64,000 bases of DNA from Camelus ferus (taxonomy: Eukaryota). Made by a program: the position numbers and the translations under genes. Of the stretch, positions 5,205-19,899 are shown in pieces; position 1 is the first letter of the stretch, and each line of letters opens with the position of its first letter. The stretch is taken from contig NC_045702.1 in NCBI RefSeq assembly GCF_009834535.1, forward strand, positions 5,952,001 through 6,016,000. The letters are read 5' to 3'. The notes beneath the pieces are model-generated. The model was not told where the DNA came from, ran no database searches, and saw only the letters and a list, made by a program, of their open reading frames with translations.

Positions 5205-5321
5205 GGAAGCAAGGAGCACCAGGAGGCCCAGTGCAGCAGGGTGCAGCGGGCCGGTGAGGACCTCCAGAGCTACTACTTACCCGGACAGTTTGCCTTCCTC
5301 AAAGCCTTGCCCCCCAGCTGA
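5205..5321 (+). CDS. RARRES2: Chemerin coding exon 4 (C-terminal receptor-activating peptide, stop)
   Basis: GSKEHQEAQCSRVQRAGEDLQSYYLPGQFAFLKALPPS-TGA. The spliced total is 163 aa, the known prochemerin length. Donor GTAGGT at 5331 leads to a 3'UTR exon starting ~5527. Confidence 0.96.
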   Translation, partial: GSKEHQEAQCSRVQRAGEDLQSYYLPGQFAFLKALPPS

Positions 5322-5624
5322 GGACTGAAGGTAGGTGGCCAGAGGGAGGAAGAGAGGACGGAGTGGGGCGAGGACAGCCTGGGGTGGGGTTGGGCTGGGA
5401 GACTGAGCTGCAGCTAGGCTGTGGGAGGCAGGGAGGAGAAGGATTCACAGCCTGAGAAGAAAGCTGGGACCGGGCCCAAACAGCCTCCCTCACACCCAGT
5501 CTTAGTTTCTTTCCCCTTTCCTCTAGAAGTTCATCTGGCTTCCTGGAAGCTGTGGGAGGTAACCAGTGAGAGACCACCCTCCCTTCTCCGCGCCCAGGGA
5601 GGACCAGCCCACTATCCCTGAGCT

Positions 5625-5897: not shown

Positions 5898-5903
5898 TTT
5901 AAT
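5898..5903 (-). terminator. LRRC61: Putative LRRC61 poly(A) signal ATTAAA
   Basis: TTTAAT on + (ATTAAA on -) ~600 nt downstream of the LRRC61 stop, followed on - by a TG/T-rich tract. Confidence 0.6.
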
Positions 5904-6507
5904 AGGGATGGGCGTGGGTGGGAACAGTCAGCGCAGGCTCCGGGGAGACCCAGGACTGGGGGCACAGCAGAGGGTCACTGGGACAGGCGAATTCGGAAGG
6001 TGGGTAGGTGCGGCTTCCACGCTCTGTGCTCTGCCCTGTCCTCACCCAGGACTGGCTGGAACAGGAGGCTCGCTATCTGTGTCTTTCTCTCACCTTGAGC
6101 CTTAGGAAGAAGCAACTTTCTTCCACTGAGTCTCGGGCTCTCGCAGCCAGGAGTGGCAGCAGCTGTGGACACGGGGCCTCTTCCAAGGCGCAGTGTAGGT
6201 TGCAGGACAGCCTCACACAATGCCAGCTGCCAATGGAGGGCTTGAGGGCCCTCACACCTGCTAGAGGCCGCTCTGGAGGGAGGTGTGTCCCTGACGTATG
6301 TGGCAGAGGGTGGGGAATTTTTCTTGAGGTCAGAGTGGGAGGGAGGGGGCTGCTCTTGGGGACAGGGACCCATGAAGAGCCCCAGGTGCAGGGCCAGTGA
6401 CCAGCATGATGAAATGGTGAAAACAAGCACGGAGGCAAGCGGGGACTTGTAGGTGAGGAGGCATAATGTGCCAACCCCATGGCCCTGGGCCAGGCCGCAG
6501 GACACGC

Positions 6508-7253
6508 TCAAAAGACAAAGGAGGAGGTGGTGCCTGCAGGGCCGAGCGCCCGCTCAGCCTGGGCCAGGCTGTCCCCGGCCTGGCGGTCCAGGTCGCGGCA
6601 CTCCTGTAGGGTGGCCTGGAACTGCCGGCAGGCCTCCTCTAGGATGGCGCTGCTGGGGGTGGGCCAGGACTCCCAGTACCCAGGCTCTACCCAGGGCTGG
6701 GCCTCCCGGGCTCGGGGGCCGGGGCCTGAGCTGGGGCGCAGGGAGCTGTCCAGGTCCCGGCACAGCTGGTAGAAGTCACTGCCGCACCCGCTCACGCGCT
6801 CGCCATCGATGGCCTTCAGGCCGGGCAGCAGCTCCCGGACCGCGGCCCCGTAGGTGGGGCTGGCGCAGAGCGGGTTGCTGAGCCGGGCCAGCGGGTCGCG
6901 GAGCCGCAGGCACTCGAGGCCCCGGCCAGCAGGTTGCCGGCCACGTTGAGGCTCTGCAGGTTCTCGCAGGCGGCCAGGGGCTCCAGCCCCGTCAGCCGGT
7001 TGTTAGCGACGTTGAGCACAGCCAGCTGGCGCAGGGAGGCCAGCGGGCCCAGCTGGGTGAGCGCGTTGCCCGACAGGTCCAGCCACTCGAGGCCCAGGCA
7101 CTCCCCCAAGCAGCCCAGGTCCACCAGCCCCAGGCCCCGCAGCTTCAGCAGCAGGATGGACTCCAGGGCGAACTCGCCCGAGCGTGACTTGAGCAGCTGG
7201 GGTGTGACGCGCACCCCATCAGCCTCACCTGGCTTCTCACCCCGAGGCTCCAT
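6508..7253 (-). CDS. LRRC61: Leucine-rich repeat-containing protein 61, single coding exon, frameshifted by an apparent 34-nt deletion near 6922
   Basis: The N-terminal frame reads MEPRGEKPGEADGVRVTPQLLKSRSGEFALESILLLKLRGLGL...NVAGNLLA. The C-terminal frame reads GLECLRLRDPLARLSNPLC...DFYQLCRDLDSSLRP...TSSFVF-TGA. The span is 746 nt versus 780 nt for the 259-aa human protein as I recall it. The exon acceptor is at 7382-7383. Confidence 0.9.
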
Positions 7254-10252
7254 GAGACAAAGTGGGCCACCTAGGCCCTGGCAGGTCCGTCCCTGGGATG
7301 TAGGTGCCACTGGAGGTCAGCTGGCTGCTCTCCCTGAAGGAGGCCTGTTTCCAACACCCCGACTCACAGGCCTGCAGGTCCCTGAGGAGAGACAATGACA
7401 TAGTCAGCGGGCCTCCGAGCACCTCCGTGACCACCCAGCCTCTACCGCCAGGGCCAGAAACCTAGATGGCCCAGCATGACGTGAGGACTCAAGTCCAAGG
7501 CAAAGGAGGGCAAAGAGCCCCTTAGAGAGAGGTGGGTGGGCACAGGCCCCCACCTAAGGGGGGCCCCCGACTTGGCTCTGGGGGTCATGGCCATGCTGGA
7601 TGGAATTCAGGCCCAATGTTGCCAATTATTCCCATTTTCCAAATCTGCACTCAGGCACAATCGCGGTATTTTCCTTTCTTGGTAACCACTCATGATTATC
7701 TGTTATTATTTCTGAGGTGCTTCTTTTTAACCATTTAAATTTATTTTTGAATAGATAACAGGTCACCATCATCGCTGATCTTGTTTCCTTCCTGGGAGAG
7801 CTATACATTTGCAAACACAAAGTAGAGCACGCTGGGCCTTGCTTTATTCGCCCGAATGTATTCTGGACTCAATTTTTCTTTTAAGCAATGAATTCAAAAT
7901 GGTTTCCGGGTTCCATGGGCCAACTTGTAACCTCTGGTTGCAGCTGTGGGGCCTGAAGGCTCAGCCTTCAGTCCCAGATGAGGCAACTGAGGGACGCCAG
8001 ACGCCCGGGGAGTAGGCGGCAGGACTGCCAGGCCCCAGGCCTTTGCTACCGCTACCCCCGCCCCCGCCCGCCCGCTGGCCCGCCCGGGCACTGGCTCTTC
8101 ACTCCGGCGTCCACAGAACAGCATTTCTCTGGATGCCAGATAACACAGTTCCAACTGCAAACATGACATCATTTCCAAAGTGGGCAAAGGGGGTCTGGGG
8201 AGGGCAGGCCAGGCAGTCAAGGAAGCCATCTTGGAGGGAGGGGCAGGGTGGCACCTATGTTAGCTCCAGAAAGGCAAGGGAAGGAGGGGACTTTCAAGTC
8301 ACCAGGGGCCACAGAAGCCGAAGTGCCAGTGCAAGACCAGCCGTGACAGAGGAGGCCTGGGGGTGGGTCGCTGGCGATGCTGAGCACAGAGGGGTCAGGG
8401 TTTAGGCGAGAGGAAAACAAACAGGGACTTCTGCTCCAAGTGGCAGCTCCCCAACCCAGCAGACGCCGGCCAGGCCCAGGCCAGGCCAGGCCAGGCAGGG
8501 TGACGCCTGCAGAGAACCAAGGGGCCTTTCACTCCCGCTGTTTACAAAACCCACCGGGGCTGGAGTGTCCGCCAGGCCCAAGCTGCGTTTCTATAGTAAC
8601 GTCACTTTCCATTCCCCCTCCTAGGAAACCAGACCCAAAGCTCCTCCCACACCCCACTCCTCCAGCCCTGGGGAGCTGGGGAGGCTGCTAACGTATCTGG
8701 CCCCAACCCTCCCACCCCACGTCTGAGAAAGGGGTCCCCCATCTTTACCCAGCACCCCCCTCGTGGGCAGCAGTCCAGCTCCTTCATTTCCACCAGAGTT
8801 TCTTGCCAAAAGGCATTGGAGGCACCTGAAGAAGCCTGGCTCATTCTCCGCAGGAGCATCTGCTGGGGTTTGTCAGCAGGGAGTGACGCAGTCCCCTCTG
8901 CATCTGGTTACACCTGCTCTGGCCTGTAGGGTGGGGTGGGGCACGAGGGGCACCAGACCCTGAAAACATGCCATAAAAGCACTAGCAAGCGACAAGGACC
9001 CCGCCAAAGGCAACGAGAGATGGAGAGGAGGGAGAACACGTGCTTGGGACCTGGCCACGTGACCAGACGCACAGCTCCTACCTCCCACGCAGCTGGGACA
9101 GGCAGGGTGGGGGCAAGAAGACTTAGCTGGGACAAGGCTATAGGGTGCCTGTGGCATCGGCCTTAGGAGGCAGGTGCAGATCCACCCACCATGTGAGCAC
9201 ACAGCACACCAGGCCAGCCTTAAGGGGACACGGGCTTCTTTCAGTTATCTGTGGACCTTACTCTAGGAGGATGGCTATCCTCCCAGCCATACTATTTTGG
9301 GGGTGAAAGTGGTCAGGAACCCCTGGGGTACACTGGGTCCAAACGAGAAGAGGCCATCAGGTGGGGCAGTCTGGGGCAGAGGGGAGGCCACAGTGGACCA
9401 CGAGGGTCAGGGAGAGATGCCCTGAGGAGCAGGTTAGTGATGGAGATGGAGGTGGTGGCCCGAAGGGAAGGAAAGAACGAGGGAGCAGGGACAGAATGGT
9501 GTACCCGCTGCCCACGGTAAAGCCGGAGGGTAGAGGAATGCTTTCTGCAGAAGAGGAACCAGAGGAGCAGAAAGATCCCACTGGGACTGCAAATCAAGCC
9601 TTCTGTGCCCCAAGGTCCTATCTGGTGGGAAATACATGCCCCTCCAGCCCACGGCTCTGTGCCTTCGGTCCTGCACCCTTGTCCGCAGTTAGATGAACAG
9701 CACCACAGTCAAAACACGATTTGCCAGTGCATCAACCGTCTCCGTTCTGCTCCTAGTCACTGTCTTACCTCAGATCTGCACACCTCAACAAGGCAAGGGC
9801 CCACACACCTGTGCAAACCCAGGTGTACCCAAATGGAGAGGCTAGCAACTGAGAGGAGGCTCTTCACGATGGGAGAATGGCTCAGCCACACCTAACCCTG
9901 TCAGCCCTCCTCTCTGAAAAGCAAGGAAATGAGCAGAGGCTGTTGGCCCAGTGCGGGTCTGTGAAAAGGACTTAGTTATGTGGATGAGACTATGACCAAG
10001 ACACAGGTGACATTCAGCTCTCCGGAGGGAGGCCCATCTTCCCTTGTTCAGAGCCAGCTTTTCTGAATCTCAGGTTACCTCTGTAGGAAATGGGCCAGGA
10101 AAGGATGCCCGTGAGTCAGGAAGAGTGGGGCAGAGCTAAGTCTAGGAGAGAAAAAGTTCAACTCAGAGCAGCCTCAGGTGGACAGTCACCTGGCAGCTTC
10201 GGCGGACTGGGGACCCTCCTCCACCCCATCGCCTCCCGTCCCCGATCTGGCA

Positions 10253-10464
10253 CAGGTTCTTCAACCCTGGCCCTACCACCATTTGGGGCTGGATTGCGTC
10301 TGTTGTGGGGTCTGCTCTGGCCATTGCAGGATGTTCAGCAGCATGTGTTTTCCACCCACGAGAGGACAGGAACAATTCCCCCTACAGGCTGTGCCAACCA
10401 AAACCTCTCCAGAAACTGCTGAATGTCCCCTGGGGAACAAAACTTTTCCTGTTGAGAACCACTG
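10253..10464 (-). mobile_element. MER20-like hAT-Charlie MITE, near full length
   Basis: The minus strand begins CAGTGGTTCTCAACAGG...CCCCAGGGGACATTCAGCAG and ends ...GGTTGAAGAACCTG, matching the MER20 pattern. Confidence 0.75.
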
Positions 10465-11064
10465 CTCTGGAGCCCAAGCCCCCAAGACCGTGAAGCTTCT
10501 CACCCTCCTCCTTGCACCGACCCCCGTCTTCCTCACATGCTCCCACCCCACTGCCTCTCCATTCCAGCCCCTCACCCTCAGGAACACAGAGTGCGGTTCC
10601 GTGACGCCGAACAGCAAGGGGACGGTGCCCCTGCCAAGGACAGCTCAAGGGGATAGTGGCACTGACCATGAGCGGCCCCCAGAACAACTTGGGGTGCATC
10701 ACATCCCCGCCCCCACCTTACCTACTGCACCCGCATGTGGGAGGCAGGGACAGGATGATGCAGTTTTAAGATGATCTCAGGCGATTCACATTCAAGTCTG
10801 AGCCACATGTGCAATTTAAGGGAGGGAGGCAGGGAGGGGGCCGGGCTGGTGCAGGGCAGCGCCCTGATCTCATCACCAAATGAGGTTGATACAGAGTCGG
10901 GGACGTTACAGAGCACAGCCTCAGTCCTGGCCTCTCATCACAGGGAGCCGGTGACACACACCCTCTCCAACGGCTGGGACAGGAGATGCGACCTAAGCAG
11001 TGTGGAGGCCAGACCTGACTTCCAGTCACGCTGCTCCAACCACTGAACGTGATCTGTACGAAGC

Positions 11065-11070
11065 TTTATT
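11065..11070 (-). terminator. Putative ZBED10 poly(A) signal AATAAA (inside LRRC61 intron)
   Basis: First canonical minus-strand AATAAA I find downstream of the ZBED10 stop (~1.17 kb 3'UTR). Confidence 0.6.
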
Positions 11071-12242
11071 CAAGAAGATGCCACAATGACACCGTTAAAA
11101 TGAAAATACACCATGCTAAGTAGGACAGGGTATGATCTCAAAGTAAAAAAAGGAAATATGTTTAAGTAGTAACAGAGGCCATCTGAATGAAAGGATGACT
11201 GTGAATTTCTCCAGCTCCTCGTGTTCTCAGTAACTTCCGAATGTCCTGCAGTGAATTAGTCACAGTGACACAGGGGAAGCAAGGGGACAGGCCTCCCAGG
11301 CTCACCCCCACAGCCAGGGCCACAGTGCAGATTAGGCCTTGGTGCCTCGCCCTGCGTCTCCCCACCTTCCGTCTCATCGCCACGTCCCCTGGTGACCCAG
11401 CACCTTGGGAGAGCTAGACTCGCGTCTTGTGGGGTGGGACGGGCCACCCCACACACCCCTACCTCGCCTTTTCCTTCTTCTCCACCGGATCCCCCCAGTG
11501 CCTGGTCCCACGCCCTCAGGTCCTGCCCTGGCCCCAAAAGAACTCAGGCCAGGCTGTTCCATTCCTAGGATATACATCTTTCCTTGCTTCCTGAGGTGTT
11601 CACTATAGAAAGGAAGAAACCCCAAGGTTTCTGGGGGTCTGCAAACTACAGGTAAAAATGACAGTGTGAGGACTGGGGGGTCTCAGCTCTCCTCAGTCAC
11701 ATGCCCTCAGCTCCCAGCCACCAGAGCTCTGGGGCACTCTGGGATCCAGGGAGAGTACAGGCCTGAGAAGCCCTGTGTGCCCGTGGGCCCCTTCCTCTTA
11801 AAACAGCTCCTCTGTCTCAGGGAAGAGCGCCCACAGTGTCCCCCTGCCCTGGGTGGCTGGGCATATCCCCCCCCGCAGCACACACGGCTCCCCTGGCCTC
11901 TGGCTGCTCTCAGGGCCCGCACCCCCGACACACACGGACAAGCTGCATGGGGGGCCCTTACTACCCACTGGTATTTTAAAAGAGCACCACAGTTAATAAG
12001 CTGTGTAGTACAACTGGGAGTCACCCATGAGCGGAGTAAACCTTTCCACACACACACCGCTGGCCATAAGTCAAGCGGCGGCCAGATGGAAAAGGACACC
12101 TCCCTGAAGCGAAAGCAGCCATCTGGCAAGAGGTGAGAAACTGCCCTCATTCTTTTCAAACATGTTTAAGGTTCCCGCTGCCCTTGTCTAATGTCCTCCG
12201 GTGCAATACTCTGCTTCTTTCCACAGGCAGCTTTTCGGGGCA

Positions 12243-15200
12243 TCAGACCGTGCGGTCAGGCTCACTGGTCTGTTCCACATCAGCCAGGTCTCCACTGGGG
12301 AAGATAAGGGGCGGCGGGGTGTAGCTGGGGAAATTCTCCAGGTTGGTCTTCAGGAAGAGAAGATGCTGGATGGCGTCCACTGGGAGAGGGGGGTCATGTT
12401 CCGTGATGGTCCGGCTGCCCAGGGAGGCCAAGACACTTGCCGAGAAGGTGCCCGTCGGGGGGCAGGACAGATAGATGGTGGCCAGTCTCGCCAGGGCTGG
12501 CCAGACATCCCACCTCTTCTCCCAGTAAGCCAGGGGGTCCTCCTGGGCACCCACCACCTCATTCTCGCGCAAGTACTTCTTCACAATGACGCTGGCCTGG
12601 TGGTTCTCCATGGAGAGCGAGGCACCACTCCTCCTGGAGGCCAGCAGCCCCACGCTTTCCAGCTGCTCCAGCAGGCTCTTCTCCCTCTGGCCAAACAGCA
12701 AAGACTCAGAGGCACTGCCTCTCTGCACAGGGTCCTCTTGGTCCTTTCCCTCTGCCCCGGAGCTCTTGGCCACTCTGCCACTCAAGGCGGCGTCCGCACG
12801 CACAGCCCTGGGGCTCTGCAGGGACGGCGAGGGAGGCAAGGAGTATTCCGACACCATGATCTCCTTCACCTTGTACACAAGCACCTGCTTCCAGTGGTCA
12901 ATGTCGGCCCCCGCGGGCAGGATGGCCTCGATCCTCCCCTTGAAGCGGGGATCCAAGAGGGTCGCCAGCACAAACTCCTCGCGGTGGAAGAGCTCGGTGA
13001 GCTGGCCATCAGTGGTCAGCTGCAGGGCCAAGCCCTCAGCCAGCCGCACAGCTGCACCCATCTCCCCAGCGCTCTGCTCCTCAAAGTACCCGCGAACCTG
13101 CTCCAGGAAGATGTGCAGGTAGCGCAGCTGGGGCAGCACCAGGCTCAAGGAAGCCTGTGTGGTGCTCGCCTCCCGGACCACCATCTGGAAGGGCCGCAGG
13201 AGCTGGACCAGGCTGTCTGTCAGGCTCCAAAACATGGCCGACAGGGCCGTCCCCGCCTTCCCCAGCTGGTGTTTCTCCTCATACTCCTGCAGTGGCCGCT
13301 GCTGCTCCACCAGCCACTCCATCAGGTGGTAGGCAGAGACCCAGTGGTCCGAGAGCTCCCAAAAGGGCTGGTGCGCTGGGAGGCCGCACCGCCGCTGCAG
13401 CCGGGAGAGGAGCCGCCGGGCCTCTGCGGAGCCTTGGAAGTGGCTGCAGATGGCCCTGGCCGTGCCCAGGATGATCTGGACGCTGTGATGGTGACACAGA
13501 AAGCTTCCCACCAGAGAGTCGAGGCAGTGGACAAAGCAAGGGACAGGGATGTAGCCCTCTGTCCTCACCGCCTGCTCCAGGCTGGGGCAGCCACCCGCCA
13601 CCAGAAAGCCCGGCCTCAGGGAGCCGTGGCTGAGCCACAAGCTGAGCTGCTCCCGCAGCTCCCGCTGCCTGTCCTCTAGGGCACTCTCCAGGGGAAGGCC
13701 CCAGACCCAGAGCACAGCCTGCTTCCTTGGGCTCCCAGACCCCACCTGTTGGCTACCCGGCCGTGTCATCCCCCAGTGGGCAGTGATGGCCACATAGTCC
13801 ACAACTGTGTCCTGGGCTGCCACGGACACACTGAGGTGAACGCAGCCACCCTTAGCCCACCGCATTTCCTGACGCACCTGCTCCCCCATTGCTTCATAGA
13901 GCAGAGGCAAGGCTTTCCCAGAGAAGAAGGCTGGAGGTGGCAGGTGGTAGCAGGGATCCACCTGGGCCATAAATCTTCTGAAGGGTGGGGACGAAACAAA
14001 AGAAAGTGGCAAGGCCAGGCTGCAGAGTAACTCGGCAATGCTGTGGTTCCAGGCCTGTGCTCGGGGCTGGTTGGGGGCATACAGGCCACCCTGGTCCTCC
14101 CCACCCGCCACAGGGGCAGCAGTAGGTTTATCTCTGGTGGGAGTAGGCAGCGGGGGCAGATCTTGTACCAACTGCTCAGGCCTGCCTGGGGCTGCCTGCC
14201 CCTCCCCGTCTTCTGGAGGTGAGGCATCCGGGCAGCGTCGTGGTGATGGGAGCCCCTCGGAGACCTGGCCAGCGGCACCTGCGGGCAGGCCCTTCTGTTT
14301 CTTCTCAGCCCCTCCCCGCTCCCTCCCAGGGCCGGCCGCAGTTGGCTTTCTCCCCACGTCCAGCCCATGCTTACTTGCCAAGTGGCGGACCAGACCCGAG
14401 GGCTGGGACTGCCCCTTCACCTTGCCCTGTCTGATGCTCGCATGGCACAGAGTGCAGGTGACCCGGCAGATGTTCCTGTAGTTGACGGTGAAGAATCGTC
14501 TCAGGTCGGGTGTGGGCTTCTGACCCATGGTGTCCAGGGGGCCTGGGGGCGGCCCAGGGGCCCAGCCCTTGGCCTCCGCCCCTGCCGTGCTGACCAGCTT
14601 CTTGGGGCAGAGTGGCCTCTGGAGGCTCAGCAGGGGCGGCTGCTCCCCAACGCCAGGGAGCAAATGCCTCTTCTTCCACTTCTTGAGGTGACGCACCTCT
14701 CTGGCCAGGCGGGCTATGAGGACGTCGGTCTGCCTCACCTCCTCATTCTCACCAGGCTGGCCCACCTCTCGCCTGTCCGGGCTGCTGGTCTGAACCAGTA
14801 CCAGGCTGGAAGGGGCCTGTCCAGAGCTGAGCACTGGGTCCCTCGATGTCCTTGCTGCCTGCTCCCCCTCCTTTCTCCGTCCACGTGCCTTCTGCTTGGA
14901 CACCTTCTTCCTAGGCTGCACCGGGGGCTCCTGCCCCAGCACAGATTTGAGACCACAGGGTCCAGGGTCTCCCTTTGGCTTATTCTTATCCTGCCCAGGG
15001 CTGGCGTGGCAATTTGCCCCAGAGACAGCTGGGTGAAGACCAGGCCTCTCCAGGGAGTAGGCCCTTCTCTTCTTGTTGCAGACATGCAGGCCCAGGGGAC
15101 CTTCCTCCTGCTCCTCCAGGAAAGCCTGGTCAGGCGAAGGGACAGACAAGGCTCTGGGGAGGGATCGAGGTCTCTTCCTCTGCAGGGGCAGCTCCCTCTC

Positions 15201-15497
15201 ACTCTTCTTCTGGGAGTTGGAGGCGCTGATCTTCCTGGAGCCACCAGCCTTCTCCTCTATGTCTGCAAACTCAAGTTTGACCTCGTTCTCTGGCAGGTGC
15301 CCCCCTGCAACCCAGCCAAGTCCACAAGAGGTGTTGGTGGCTCTGGTGTTGAACTTGGAGCTGGAAGAAGCCAGAGTGGTAACTGGGCTCTTGGCTCTAG
15401 TCTTGGCAGAGTCAGAACACAGAGGGGGCTCTTGCCCCACTGATCTTGAGGGTGTATGTTTCTTGGGGGGCTTTCTGACCTTTTCTACTTCCGACAT
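12243..15497 (-). CDS. ZBED10: Full-length BED zinc finger / hAT-transposase-derived protein (1084 aa); intact orthologue of human ZBED10P (ZBED6CL/C7orf29)
   Basis: Uninterrupted ORF; first ATG at 15497 (agcATG); acceptor ctgttcttctcatcttgccttacAG at 15531-15532. It has a BED finger FF...CTLC...LVRHLASKH and Ac-type hAT motifs: ITAHW, PCFVH, HWVS, ATLLDPRFK, DPLAYW...WPALARLA..YLSCPPT, LLFLKTN. It sits in an LRRC61 intron on the same strand, as for human ZBED10P. The symbol rests on synteny plus domain content. Confidence 0.88.
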   Translation of the reverse strand: MSEVEKVRKPPKKHTPSRSVGQEPPLCSDSAKTRAKSPVTTLASSSSKFNTRATNTSCGLGWVAGGHLPENEVKLEFADIEEKAGGSRKISASNSQKKSERELPLQRKRPRSLPRALSVPSPDQAFLEEQEEGPLGLHVCNKKRRAYSLERPGLHPAVSGANCHASPGQDKNKPKGDPGPCGLKSVLGQEPPVQPRKKVSKQKARGRRKEGEQAARTSRDPVLSSGQAPSSLVLVQTSSPDRREVGQPGENEEVRQTDVLIARLAREVRHLKKWKKRHLLPGVGEQPPLLSLQRPLCPKKLVSTAGAEAKGWAPGPPPGPLDTMGQKPTPDLRRFFTVNYRNICRVTCTLCHASIRQGKVKGQSQPSGLVRHLASKHGLDVGRKPTAAGPGRERGGAEKKQKGLPAGAAGQVSEGLPSPRRCPDASPPEDGEGQAAPGRPEQLVQDLPPLPTPTRDKPTAAPVAGGEDQGGLYAPNQPRAQAWNHSIAELLCSLALPLSFVSSPPFRRFMAQVDPCYHLPPPAFFSGKALPLLYEAMGEQVRQEMRWAKGGCVHLSVSVAAQDTVVDYVAITAHWGMTRPGSQQVGSGSPRKQAVLWVWGLPLESALEDRQRELREQLSLWLSHGSLRPGFLVAGGCPSLEQAVRTEGYIPVPCFVHCLDSLVGSFLCHHHSVQIILGTARAICSHFQGSAEARRLLSRLQRRCGLPAHQPFWELSDHWVSAYHLMEWLVEQQRPLQEYEEKHQLGKAGTALSAMFWSLTDSLVQLLRPFQMVVREASTTQASLSLVLPQLRYLHIFLEQVRGYFEEQSAGEMGAAVRLAEGLALQLTTDGQLTELFHREEFVLATLLDPRFKGRIEAILPAGADIDHWKQVLVYKVKEIMVSEYSLPPSPSLQSPRAVRADAALSGRVAKSSGAEGKDQEDPVQRGSASESLLFGQREKSLLEQLESVGLLASRRSGASLSMENHQASVIVKKYLRENEVVGAQEDPLAYWEKRWDVWPALARLATIYLSCPPTGTFSASVLASLGSRTITEHDPPLPVDAIQHLLFLKTNLENFPSYTPPPLIFPSGDLADVEQTSEPDRTV
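14367..14503 (-). other. BED zinc finger domain of ZBED10
   Basis: RRFFTVNYRNICRVTCTLCHASIRQGKVKGQSQPSGLVRHLASKH fits the BED consensus (aromatic pair, CxxC, L.RHL...H). Confidence 0.88.
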
Positions 15498-16662
15498 GCT
15501 TGGGAGCTTGGGGCAATGAGAAGGCCCAGGCTGTAAGGCAAGATGAGAAGAACAGCTCAACGAGGGGAGGTGAGGCCGGAGAGGGGAGAAGAGAGCTGAG
15601 GATGGAGGTGCAGTTACCACATGGAATCAGCCCCAGGACAAAACTCTCCAGACCCCGACCTCCTTGGTGAATGAAGCCTGACGTTCACTCCTCCAGACCC
15701 AACGGAGCCGCCCTGGACCAGAACCCCCACAGCCCTCTGCACGTTAGTGGTTTCTGGGTCCATCTTCTTTGCCAAATTAACTGAGGTTTCTCTCTTTTCT
15801 TTCAATGTTCACCCAGAACCTAGTAGGCACTTGGCAATGTTCCTGTGTGATGGATACAATATAAAGTTGGCAAGGCACCTGCATGCACATGGCCCTCAGG
15901 CTGGTGGGCGAGACAAACGTGAATAAGAGACATGCACGACACAGACAATTTAAGCCAAGGTGTAGGGTGTGGAGGAGCACTACAGGGGCTGTGAGACCCC
16001 ATAAGGAAGACACTCATGAGGAAAACAGCTAGGTCTCCCTGGAAGAGCTGCAGGCCGGCAGCGAGTGGAGGTGGCCGGTCTCTGCATCCTGTGCCCCTAG
16101 GTGGTACTTGGCACCTCCAGGGCACCATGAAAAGGTAACAGCGATCAGTTTTCACGGATCATGCAGCCCGAGGCTTCCTAAGCCTCCTGCCAGAGCACAC
16201 GGTGTGGGGCCACTCCCGATGCCACTGACCCAGACCCCCGGCATCCTATCACAGACAAACTCCTGAAGGGCTGTTTCTACCTTCTCACCTCCCATTCCTC
16301 GAAAGCCCACTCCTCTCCAGCTCCCGCCCCAACAGGTCCCTGACACTGACACAGCTGAGGCCCCCTGGTGACCCTCATGGCCCCACCTCAGGGGACTTCT
16401 CTGCACTGGAGCAATTGCTCGAGCCCTCCATCTAGAATGCTGTGGCCCAAGGCCCTGGGACACCATGTTCTCTTGGCTTTCCTGTCACCTGTGACTCCTT
16501 TTCAGTCTCTGCCCATCCCTCAATGGCGATTCCCAGGGTTCCTCGTTTCCAGGCCCTGGTTCTACTTCCATACCTCCTCCCCAACTGGAGCTGCATCTGC
16601 ATTTCCACACAGACCCCTGTGAACCCCTCTTGGCTCCCAACTCCCTCCCAGGCTCCCCTCAC

Positions 16663-16796
16663 CTGCTCTTCCCACAGTCAACTCCATCTCGGTAAATGGG
16701 ACACCTGTTCACCCAGATGCTCAGACCCCAAACCTATGGACAATCCTTAATTCCCTTCCCCGCATTCATCTTCCGGAGATGAGGTCAAATTCAGGA
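16663..16796 (-). other. LRRC61: Predicted non-coding exon 2 of the LRRC61/ZBED10 transcription unit
   Basis: A ~70-nt polypyrimidine tract ends in TAG (16797-16799); donor CAG|GTGAGG at 16662; 134 nt. Confidence 0.55.
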
Positions 16797-18399
16797 CTAT
16801 CAAAAGAAAAGAGACATGAAGAAAACAAAAGAGAAATGTGTGGAAAGAAGAGAATGTGAGGAAGGAGGAGCCCGGGGAGCCAGGACACGTGTCCCGGGGA
16901 AAGAGAAGGTTCAAAGGAAGGTGGCTCAGATCCCCACCCTGAACATCTGAGAGCAGGGAGTGTGCGTCTCTCCAGACCAGAGCAAAGTGCAGGGTAAGTG
17001 AGGAGATGGGAGCCAGAACATTCTGACACTGGGCAATGATAACCATTCAGAAGGATCACCAGGGCTGGCAGGATGGCCTTCACTGTTGACCGGTGGCTCA
17101 AGCGAGAACTGGCCATGGAGAAGCGTGGACAATATGATGCAGAGGAGCCCCTTCCAGCAGGAGGGCCCTCAGAAGAACTAAGAGAAATTACCCAGGCAGC
17201 CGCCACCGAACCCGATGTCTGCGGCCCACGGGCAGTGACACTGTGGAGGCGCTGTGGATGACGCTGTGGGTCAAGGTGCAAATGAAGTGCAAGACCCTGT
17301 CCTGCCCCACAGGAGGTGCTCCAGGCATCAGAACCACAGGGGCTCACCTCCGCTCTTGTTTTGATTGAGGAAACGGAAACCCAGAGCAGCAACGTGATGG
17401 TCAGTGGCAGAGTGGAGGTCCAGAGCCAGCGCCGGGCCTCCAGAAGCAGTTGGTAGGCTTCATTGCTCCCAGGAACACAGAACTAGGTGGGCCCGTGGCT
17501 GGCCTGCTCTCACTGATAAGAGCAAGGAAAAGGAAAACACTTGAGTCAGGCTGCTGCCTAGGTCACACCCCAAAGCCTTTACCTGAGGACCTGCTAGTTT
17601 ACCCCAGGGCACCAATCCTGTTCTGTCCGCCAACTTGCCTTGTCCCACCAGTCTGTCCATATTCTGCAGAGACTCTTGATCCACTTGACCATTTAACAAA
17701 AATTTGTCAAATGTCTACCGTGAGTCAGCCCTGTACCCTAGAAACACAAACCTAAAGATGAGTAACTGCCTGGCTGCATGCGGGCTCAGGAGGAGAGGAT
17801 GACTTGGAAATGCCTCCCAGCGCCAGGGCAAGGCACCCTGGAGCCAGGCCTCGGGCTGACCTAGAGGCAAACCGGGCCTATGACATGGGAGTTTCGATTC
17901 TGTCTTGGAAGGGTGGCTTACCTTAGGCTACTGCTTCCGGATCCTTATCTCCTGACAGCCCCCTGGGGATAGGTCCAGGATCGTGTGCAATCCCTGGGAC
18001 CCACAGTAATGCTACCTCTCTCTTTTCCACTGAACCACGTCAGGATGACAGCGAGGTGGACACTGTGCAGAGCCAACCTTGAATCTACGTGAATCTAAAA
18101 TAAGAAATGTAAAAAGAAAGTCACCCACAAATTCCAGGACTTTGGTTATCAGAAGTTGTTTGTGACACTTCTCATAACGGATGACACACGCACACACTTG
18201 AGGACAACAAGATGGATCACCAGCTGTGACTGAGCGCTACGTGCACTAGTGTGCTTGGGTTTCCTGGTCTATACAACAGGGCTAACAGCAGCCAGCTCAC
18301 TGGCTTGTTACGGATTAAGGGAGTCCATGTCTGCATACCACAGTGTTTAAGGGCAGTTACTGGCGCAGAGTGCGCAATGGATACGTTACGAGCCGCCGT

Positions 18400-19150
18400 C
18401 CAGTACATTCTGGCCTCACCTCGTGTTTCAGGTGCAGGGCACTGGGAAGGAGAGGCTAGGCTAGGAGGGGGTCACCTGAGCCGCCAATGAGCGGGGCAGG
18501 CCAGAGCAAGCCATCTCCGCATCCCCCGAGTCCACAGCTGTGAAGCGGGACCACAACGCCCCCACCCCGGCTCACCTACGGCCAGGGGTCCGGCTGGCTG
18601 GGCTGGCGGAGCTGGACGCGGCTCCTGCTGTGGCCGACCGCGCCCCCGCGGCGGGTAGCAAGGCGCCGCCACCCGCACCCACCTCCGCGCCACCGCGAGT
18701 CGTACCCGAAGGCGCCAAAGGCCCCCGCAGAGCCGGGGGGGTCCCGGGTCGCAAAGAGCTACACCTCCGGGAGCAACAGCCCGCGGCGCCGCGCCCACCC
18801 CCGTCCCGCGGTTGGTACGTTCCCCGAGCCGGCGGCCAGCACCAAGTGCGCAGGCGCAAGAGGCCGAGGCCGGAAGTGGGTGGGGGTCACGCCGCCTCCT
18901 CCGCCGGATGTCGGCCGCTGCTCCCTCCTTGACCTAGGTCCCTTGGTATTAGCTCAGTAGTGCTAGTTTAATAGGCCTTAAAAGGAACACTTGCACGCTC
19001 TCCGGGCCGACGTAGTCCAGTCATACTTCTCCACCAGCCGATTCCCCAAGGCCCCTTCCGCCCCGGCCTCTCTGCGCCACCGGAGTCTGACTGCCCGAGT
19101 GCAACCTGGGTCTCGTTCGCACGTGCAGACGGAAGGGACCACGGTGACGG
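18400..19150 (-). promoter_or_regulatory. LRRC61: CpG-island promoter and exon 1 of LRRC61/ZBED10
   Basis: CpG-dense. NRF1 motif TGCGCAGGCGCA at 18847-18858; ETS/GABP motif CCGGAAGTG at 18870-18878; minus-strand donor TAG|GTGAGC with the exon ending at 18576. Confidence 0.75.
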
Positions 19151-19899
19151 CAGTGATCCATGTGTTCGGAGTCTCTTCCTGCCTTGAAGGCTCACCCAGC
19201 ATTTCAGGAAGCCCATAAAGCGTCTTATGGGGCACATTCCCGGTGATGCGCTGATGGCCTCTCCCAGAACCCAGGGGTCATCCATGCCTTCCACCACTGT
19301 GGTGCTCTGCCAACTCCCCAAACAATTGTCCCTCTCTCCTTGCGCTGGTCCCACCTGGGCACTAACCCAACTCTTGCTTCACAGGCTACCTTGAGCTTCT
19401 TTCCACCACTACAGTAAGACAAATTCAAGGGCCTCTGCTGGGACACCACTGGGCCTTGGGCAGTCCTCCCTACTCACCTTCCCAGGGCTGGTCTCGGTTC
19501 TTGCCATCTTTTTCTGGCTCCCCTCCTCTGGGCCCAAGTCCATCAGCTCCAGGCTGGTGCAGTCCTCCGGCTTGGGCTAAAACTAGGACCCCTGCAATGA
19601 GAGTATATATCTTTTCACTTTACCAAAGCTATTTTAAATCTTGTTTGATTCCATGCCTCCGAGATGGTGGTTATTGATTTTTCCATTATACAGATGAGGA
19701 AACAGAGACCCAGTCCCACAGTGTGTTACAGTAGGAGATGGGAGGAGCCACAAGTGATACTAAAATCATACTGTTGTGTCGGGGTCCGTATATAGTGGGC
19801 TCAGAGCTGGTCCCTTTGCAGTGTTAACCCAGAGGCACTCTAGAACCAAGGGTGGTTTGATTGCAAAACTGGGAGACACAGATAATAAGCTGAAAGAAC

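Follow-up and report, generated by a model that had tools for sequence, protein, structure and literature searches.

The transposase-derived gene ZBED10 is probably expressed from the LRRC61 promoter through a spliced terminal exon

The locus described here lies within a 64,000-nucleotide (nt) stretch of the Camelus ferus genome (NCBI RefSeq assembly GCF_009834535.1, contig NC_045702.1, positions 5,952,001 to 6,016,000 of the forward strand), which is referred to below, at its full length, as the window. The stretch contains ZBED10, a domesticated hAT transposase gene nested in the leader intron of LRRC61. The analysis indicates that ZBED10 is probably made from the LRRC61 promoter by way of a spliced terminal exon with its own poly(A) signal. 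Spliced transcripts in which ZBED10 and LRRC61 share an exon were observed in ferret and other mammals.

The anatomy of the locus in camel was read directly from the window. All features of the locus are on the minus strand, and positions are window coordinates. The sequence features and coordinates listed in a preliminary description of this DNA, which was made from the sequence alone, were all found to be correct. The principal features are as follows.

18400-19200, strand not assigned: CpG island, presumed shared promoter region; GC content 0.64-0.72, CpG observed/expected ratio 0.75-0.94
18576-18775, minus: non-coding exon 1, placed by homology with the ferret donor; donor GT at 18575-18574, CGTAG/GTGAGC
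17922-18094, minus: non-coding exon 2 (shared), homologue of ferret exon 2 (L004 7349-7513)
16663-16796, minus: probable optional (cassette) non-coding exon; acceptor ttttgatAG/TCCTGA, donor AGCAG/GTGAGG
15531-15556, minus: ZBED10 3' splice site, polypyrimidine tract and AG (15532-15531); direct reading, ctgttcttctcatcttgccttacAG
11045-15530, minus: ZBED10 terminal exon, comprising a 33-nt leader part, the coding sequence (CDS) and about 1.2 kb of 3' untranslated region (UTR)
12243-15497, minus: ZBED10 CDS, an intact open reading frame (ORF) of 1084 amino acids (aa); ATG at 15497-15495, 33 nt past the exon start
11020-11070, minus: ZBED10 poly(A) signal AATAAA (11070-11065) and G/U-rich downstream element; direct reading
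5898-7383, minus: LRRC61 coding exon; acceptor AG 7383-7382, CDS 7253-6508, ATTAAA 5903-5898

The 5' end of exon 1 (18775) is a minimum, set by the start of a ferret contig (L004 5555), and the 3' end of the ZBED10 terminal exon (11045) is an estimate.

Spliced transcripts in ferret and other mammals

The transcript data were 'Logan' contigs, which are short, mRNA-sized and were obtained by protein search; for ferret, both a genomic contig (L004) and RNA contigs were retrieved. In three ferret LRRC61 contigs (L012, L013 and L015), exon 1 (to L004 5768) was followed by exon 2 (7349-7513) and then by the coding exon (18070 onward). In the ferret ZBED10 contig (L006), exon 2 (to 7513) was joined to a 114-nt exon (9348-9461) and then to the ZBED10 exon (9963-14493), which was unspliced for 4.5 kb and colinear with genomic sequence between the acceptor and a point about 50 nt short of the AATAAA. 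All of the junctions in these contigs were GT-AG. The exon 2 donor (L004 7513) was joined to the LRRC61 exon in five contigs (L011-L013, L015 and L016), and since L006 is joined from the same position, this donor is common to both ferret mRNAs. The ferret LRRC61 mRNA skips the ZBED10 exon, with exon 2 spliced directly to the coding exon. Two of the LRRC61 contigs (L011 and L016) and the ZBED10 contig each start with about 30 nt of exon 2, which fits the branch point expected in a k=31 assembly graph.

The ferret LRRC61 contigs start in the homologue of the CpG island, L004 5555 corresponding to window 18775. When the ferret sites were mapped to the window, the ZBED10 acceptor fell at 15531/15530, the exon 1 donor exactly at 18576 and the exon 2 donor at 17922.

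Two additional species gave spliced ZBED10 contigs. In the contig of a second species, L001, the exon 2 homologue is represented by its last 27 nt and is joined straight to the ZBED10 exon; this leader matched camel 17948-17922 at 22 of 25 positions, and the contig terminates within the AATAAA. The contig L027, from a distant third species, has a 192-nt leader that is CpG-rich in its first part and is joined at the homologous ZBED10 acceptor; the second part of the leader could be aligned, weakly, with homologous positions near window 17450. The acceptor homologous to 15531 is used in all three species (L006, L001 and L027), and a further contig, L020, begins exactly at it. In the third species the conserved ZBED10 start codon is ATA (L027:225-245), and the ORF opens at a new ATG four codons downstream.

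Conserved signals and the proposed route

The CpG island listed above is the only one of the locus. Over 15400-17600, the roughly 2 kb located 5' of ZBED10, the CpG observed/expected ratio was 0.17-0.40. Because this region is CpG-depleted and the island is confined to 18400-19200, ZBED10 has no CpG promoter of its own, as the preliminary description had proposed. To rank the splice sites, all 731 GT and 1040 AG sites in the region were scored with an approximate position-weight matrix; the scores serve as ranks inside this region only. The donors at 18575, 17921 and 16662 were at the 98.4th, 99.6th and 99.7th percentiles, respectively, the last of these, the donor of the 16663 exon, having the top score in the region. 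The ZBED10 acceptor (15532) was at the 97.6th percentile and the LRRC61 acceptor (7383) at the 99.7th.

Five species (camel, alpaca, ferret and two more) retain the ZBED10 acceptor. Camel-ferret identity was 78% over the 50 nt preceding the acceptor and 91% over the 33 leader nt of the exon, compared with an intron background of 64-65%; alpaca DNA was 96% identical to the window across 15 kb. The exon 2 donor, CCTAAG/GTAAGC, is conserved in all four species compared (camel, alpaca, ferret and the L002 species). The exon 2 acceptor, tttcttattttAG, is retained in camel, alpaca and ferret, and in the L002 species the AG is 5 nt upstream. The donor of exon 16663-16796 is conserved in 5/5 aligned species and its acceptor AG in 4/5, with a 1-nt shift in the L019 species.

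Between 18570 and 7848 the minus strand has a single canonical poly(A) hexamer, the AATAAA at 11070. It is located inside the host intron, 5' of the LRRC61 coding exon, with the cleavage site predicted. The hexamer region AATAAAGCTT and the downstream block at the poly(A) site are kept in camel, alpaca, ferret and two further species. Two other AATAAA hexamers occur at 7740-7848 (minus), about 400 nt 5' of the LRRC61 acceptor, in an AT-rich patch (GC 0.43-0.48) that may be a repeat insertion.

The acceptor 33 nt before the ZBED10 ATG, the separate AATAAA and the acceptor of the LRRC61 coding exon had all been pointed out in the preliminary description, which proposed that a choice of splice and poly(A) site after shared non-coding exons gives either mRNA. 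Such a choice is seen directly in the spliced contigs of ferret. The second species uses the homologous acceptor after the counterpart of the shared exon, and in the third it is preceded by a CpG-rich leader of unplaced origin. The proposal extends to camel by homology.

The ZBED10 ORF was 100% identical to a Camelus ferus protein. There were 47 orthologues of about 1016-1139 aa, and over 40 mammals have a full-length copy; human has a truncated ORF. Pfam identified a Dimer_Tnp_hAT domain (PF05699) at residues 973-1053 (E = 7e-08), and the BED finger (zf-BED, PF02892; residues ~345-377) gave a weak score of 17.4 bits against a cut-off of 20.6, although the CxxC...HxxxxH pattern is visible. Camel, alpaca, ferret and two further species all have an intact ORF. 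The ratio of nonsynonymous to synonymous substitution rates (dN/dS) was 0.34-0.41 overall (0.34 vs. alpaca and 0.36 vs. ferret), and was 0.30 in the C-terminal part vs. 0.47 in the N-terminal part. ZBED10 is likewise found 5' of the LRRC61 exon in ferret, alpaca and dromedary. Together these data fit a single-copy, syntenic gene that is under purifying selection in mammals. The LRRC61 product has LRR domains matched by Pfam.

Exons 1 and 2 together (18775-18576 and 18094-17922) form a leader of 373 nt, a minimum length, that contains no ATG. Dinucleotide shuffles of this leader had a mean of 3.1 ATG, only 1.5% of them having none, and the flanking introns have 1.0-1.7 ATG per 100 nt. In camel, exon 16663-16796 would add three upstream ATGs, with one ORF overlapping the ZBED10 start; the upstream ORFs are out of frame with ZBED10 or terminated. 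This exon was present in no ferret LRRC61 or ZBED10 contig, including all five with the coding-exon junction, and is probably an optional (cassette) exon. Since exons 1 and 2 are free of ATG and the optional exon has three, 17922>15530 is the likely junction for a translatable ZBED10 mRNA. With regard to the shared non-coding exons, the preliminary description had placed them at 18576 and 16796-16663. Both are present, but the second appears to be optional and exon 2 (18094-17922) had been missed. The donor that it proposed for ZBED10, 16663 or 18576, is not the one found in other species, which use the homologue of 17922.

The small leader exons vary by lineage. The 114-nt leader exon of ferret (L004:9348-9461) is homologous to window ~16108-16015, where camel has no GT at the donor position. 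The leader exons are therefore replaced from one lineage to another, and the acceptor is unchanged. L027 has yet another leader exon, joined to the same constant ZBED10 acceptor. In alpaca, a RefSeq protein of 1131 aa (P0053, isoform X1) has a coding range that holds a 129-nt intron ending at the ZBED10 acceptor, and defines an additional exon:

15660-15763, minus: camelid mini-exon, from alpaca RefSeq isoform X1; weak donor GAG/GTCGGG at 15659

The mini-exon donor was at the 84.7th percentile and its conservation is limited to camelids. The camel ZBED10 exon has a leader part of 33 nt, and the alignment shows a 4-nt gap there, the corresponding length being 37-38 nt in alpaca, ferret and two other species. 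An N-terminal extension of the alpaca X1 type was considered for camel and rejected, because the 4-nt difference in the leader breaks the frame; the ATG of the camel mini-exon is out of frame with ZBED10 and gives a 49-codon upstream reading frame. A coding fusion of LRRC61 exons with ZBED10 was also rejected, as the leader has no ATG.

The following route is proposed. ZBED10, nested on the same strand in the LRRC61 5'-UTR intron and without a promoter of its own, would be transcribed from a start in the LRRC61 CpG island, and exon 1 (to 18576) would be joined to exon 2 (18094-17922). One partner for the donor of exon 2 would then be the nearer, moderately strong acceptor at 15531, with the 4.5-kb ZBED10 exon serving as terminal exon and cleavage after the AATAAA at 11070, to give ZBED10 mRNA. 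Alternatively, the ZBED10 exon and its poly(A) site would be skipped and the donor joined to the stronger, distant acceptor at 7382, to give LRRC61 mRNA. The mechanism would belong to the class of skipped terminal exons with intronic polyadenylation. Because the shared leader is ATG-free, translation of the two mRNAs would start in each case at the mRNA's own first ATG and give unrelated proteins. A donor at 14375 within the ZBED10 ORF would permit a minor hybrid isoform.

Weighing of the explanations

Several observations weigh against a shared promoter and leader. The ZBED10 contigs extend only about 30 nt into exon 2, and the link to exon 1, where we infer that ZBED10 transcripts start, is not carried on a single molecule. 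The CpG-rich part of the L027 leader had no significant local alignment to camel or ferret upstream sequence, including exon 1. No camelid spliced transcript was found by exact look-ups or by an N-terminal fragment search. The camel ZBED10 protein had no exact match when it was looked up in assemblies, the only match to the alpaca LRRC61 protein was the alpaca genome, and the first 220 ZBED10 residues, used as query for camelid RNA contigs, returned only horse, bat and one other contig. The only camel RNA contig, L025, is unspliced over 10715-7382, and its only splice is on the opposite strand, in RARRES2. A camel LRRC61 contig, L024, is colinear with the genome and is probably genomic DNA; neither L024 nor L025 gives information on the camel 5' exons. 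As no camelid transcript was obtained, the claim for camel rests on homology. It transfers because the splice sites and the poly(A) signal are exactly homologous, and camel is predicted to use the same junctions. The camel junction could differ, since the leader exons vary, as illustrated by the extra exon of ferret and the alpaca mini-exon. A further point comes from human, where C7orf29 is recorded as a nested gene within intron 2 of LRRC61 (PMC3192792, PMC3606216). The published start of C7ORF29 (PMC3606216) suggests a first exon just 5' of the ORF exon, which would fit an internal start.

The possibility was considered that ZBED10 is transcribed mainly from a CpG-poor, tissue-restricted promoter of its own, a few hundred bases 5' of 15530, and that the splices to LRRC61 are minor 'conjoined' read-through. 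Such a promoter would be compatible with the alpaca X1 mini-exon, which ends at window 15660 and may reach further upstream, and with the C7ORF29 start, which is about 260 nt before the reported acceptor breakpoint as calculated from published coordinates (PMC3606216, PMC9315513). VAChT, which is located in a ChAT intron, also has internal promoters (PMC3053374). However, the spliced leaders of L006, L001 and L027 carry far-upstream exon sequence and not proximal colinear sequence, and because all three contain distant exon sequence, an internal CpG-poor promoter is disfavoured. Moreover, CpG depletion extends over the proximal 2 kb, the donor of the mini-exon is both weak and camelid-specific, and RefSeq places these models under LRRC61. 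A principal promoter at this position was judged improbable. Even less probable is expression in the manner of ZBED6, the closest paralogue, which is expressed from an intron-retaining host transcript (PMC5910864). In that case ZBED10 would be made from intron-retaining LRRC61 pre-mRNA with no splice into 15530, and four contigs (L002, L003, L019 and L026) are indeed colinear with the genome across the acceptor. These contigs, however, share one run-number block and, as expected of genomic DNA, read through introns, the poly(A) site and the region of the CpG island. The acceptor is conserved and is spliced in three species, and together with the 33-nt leader it is conserved well beyond the intron background. 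These junctions agree with the suggestion in the preliminary description that the locus, unlike ZBED6, is a splice/polyadenylation switch.

It is also conceivable, though very improbable, that in camel the ORF of ZBED10 is no more than a silent relic, with splice and poly(A) signals that are due to chance. The failure of the look-ups and of the N-terminal search to return a camelid transcript would be expected of a relic, and one UniProt name labels the human copy a pseudogene. A relic is difficult to reconcile with an intact 1084-aa ORF having the low dN/dS values given above against alpaca and ferret, with an ORF intact in more than 40 mammals, or with signals that are conserved and are used in other species. 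Spliced expression of ZBED10 from the LRRC61 promoter is the explanation favoured here.

Hybrid isoform, related loci and implications

The preliminary description had regarded the two mRNAs as mutually exclusive. This is too strong, since there are RefSeq models, from dromedary, alpaca, horse and a bat, in which codon 374 of ZBED10 is followed directly by the coding exon of LRRC61. The dromedary protein P0057 ('LRRC61 isoform X1', 395 aa) consists of ZBED10 residues 1-374 followed by 21 residues that the first part of the LRRC61 coding exon encodes in a different frame. This composition implies that a donor within the BED finger, GGCAA/GTAAGC at 14375, is spliced to 7381. This site and a second feature, which affects LRRC61 in this assembly, are:

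14370-14378, minus: internal donor GGCAA/GTAAGC within the BED finger; GT at 14374-14373
6922-6925, minus: site of a 34-nt LRRC61 deletion, from alignment with alpaca and ferret

The internal donor GTAAGC is kept in ferret and two other species, and is lost in the alpaca assembly that was used. The site at 14370-14378, strong and donor-like, falls between the two histidines of the BED finger, and the 395-aa product is without the last zinc ligand.

Relative to alpaca and ferret, the LRRC61 CDS in the assembly is missing 34 nt near 6924, resulting in a frameshift. The missing 34 nt are present in the camel RNA contig L025, which is 99.9% identical to the window, and three other Camelus assemblies have the 34 nt and an intact LRRC61 of 259 aa. 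The deletion can therefore probably be put down to an error in the assembly or to a private variant, and not to gene loss. The notion that LRRC61 is dead in camels was rejected, the deletion being private to this assembly. The splice in L025 is a GT-AG splice on the plus strand from 5330 to 5525 (segments 5301-5330 and 5525 onward). It fits the last intron of the convergent gene RARRES2, the transcript of which overlaps the LRRC61 3' UTR. A join of this kind was also seen in the ferret contig L011.

Several known systems resemble this locus. ZBED6, in intron 1 of ZC3H11A, is likewise an intronless hAT-derived ORF on the same strand in a 5' intron of an unrelated host, and uses the host promoter (PMC5910864, PMC3606216). 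The ZBED6 mRNA arises by intron retention, whereas ZBED10 has a dedicated, conserved 3' splice site and poly(A) signal and forms a separate terminal exon. The nearest design is that of the cholinergic locus, VAChT/ChAT. The first intron of ChAT contains VAChT as a single-exon ORF of the same orientation, and alternative splicing after upstream non-coding sequence yields two unrelated proteins (PMC3053374). The two cholinergic proteins, however, act in one common pathway and VAChT has proven internal promoters, while ZBED10 and LRRC61 are not known to be functionally linked. In KRABINER, SETMAR and PGBD3-CSB, an intronic transposase ORF is also joined to host exons by a 5' acceptor and the parental transcript persists (bioRxiv 10.1101/2020.05.07.082677). 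In those cases host coding domains are fused, whereas the captured LRRC61 exons are non-coding and ATG-free, and for this reason no ZBED10 fusion protein is expected. The text of that paper mentions neither ZBED nor LRRC61.

Parts of the arrangement can be recognized in earlier work. Hayward et al. described C7ORF29 in LRRC61 intron 2 in human and chimpanzee and found that it adjoins LRRC61 back to frog (PMC3606216). A LRRC61::ZBED6CL junction of 1365 nt is recurrent in human leukaemia RNA-seq and was filed as an unannotated read-through (PMC9315513), and human expressed sequence tags were reported to show 'exonization ~1.2 kb upstream' of C7orf29 (PMC3192792). Both may correspond to the optional exon 16663-16796; the camel equivalent of that junction (16663>15530) would span 1132 nt. 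In alpaca, ferret, armadillo, anteater, squirrel, jerboa, two bats and pig, the product of ZBED10 is entered in RefSeq or Ensembl as an isoform of LRRC61, which indicates that the annotation pipelines found the shared exons. Neither the name ZBED10 nor the shared-promoter design was found in the literature searched. The design is ordinary in kind and implicit in the RefSeq naming, and it does not represent a new principle.

A more far-reaching proposal, which we consider unlikely, is that LRRC61 and ZBED10 have been an obligate two-gene transcription unit with a regulated acceptor/poly(A) switch since early tetrapods; in frog, ZBEDX is already a neighbour of LRRC61. If this were true, the competition of 15531 and the poly(A) site with 7382 would set the level of a DNA-binding domesticated transposase reciprocally to that of LRRC61, and the ATG-free leader and the donor in the BED finger would be selected parts of the switch.

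The label 'LRRC61 isoform X1' on a ZBED10 protein misleads users. Furthermore, knock-outs, expression quantitative trait loci and methylation signals assigned to 'LRRC61' or to its promoter would also affect ZBED10. With a shared promoter and a spliced terminal exon, ZBED10, a conserved and barely studied gene that is truncated in humans, would gain a concrete route of expression. It would be a second ZBED gene, beside ZBED6, to depend on a host promoter, but with a different RNA route, a spliced terminal exon instead of intron retention.

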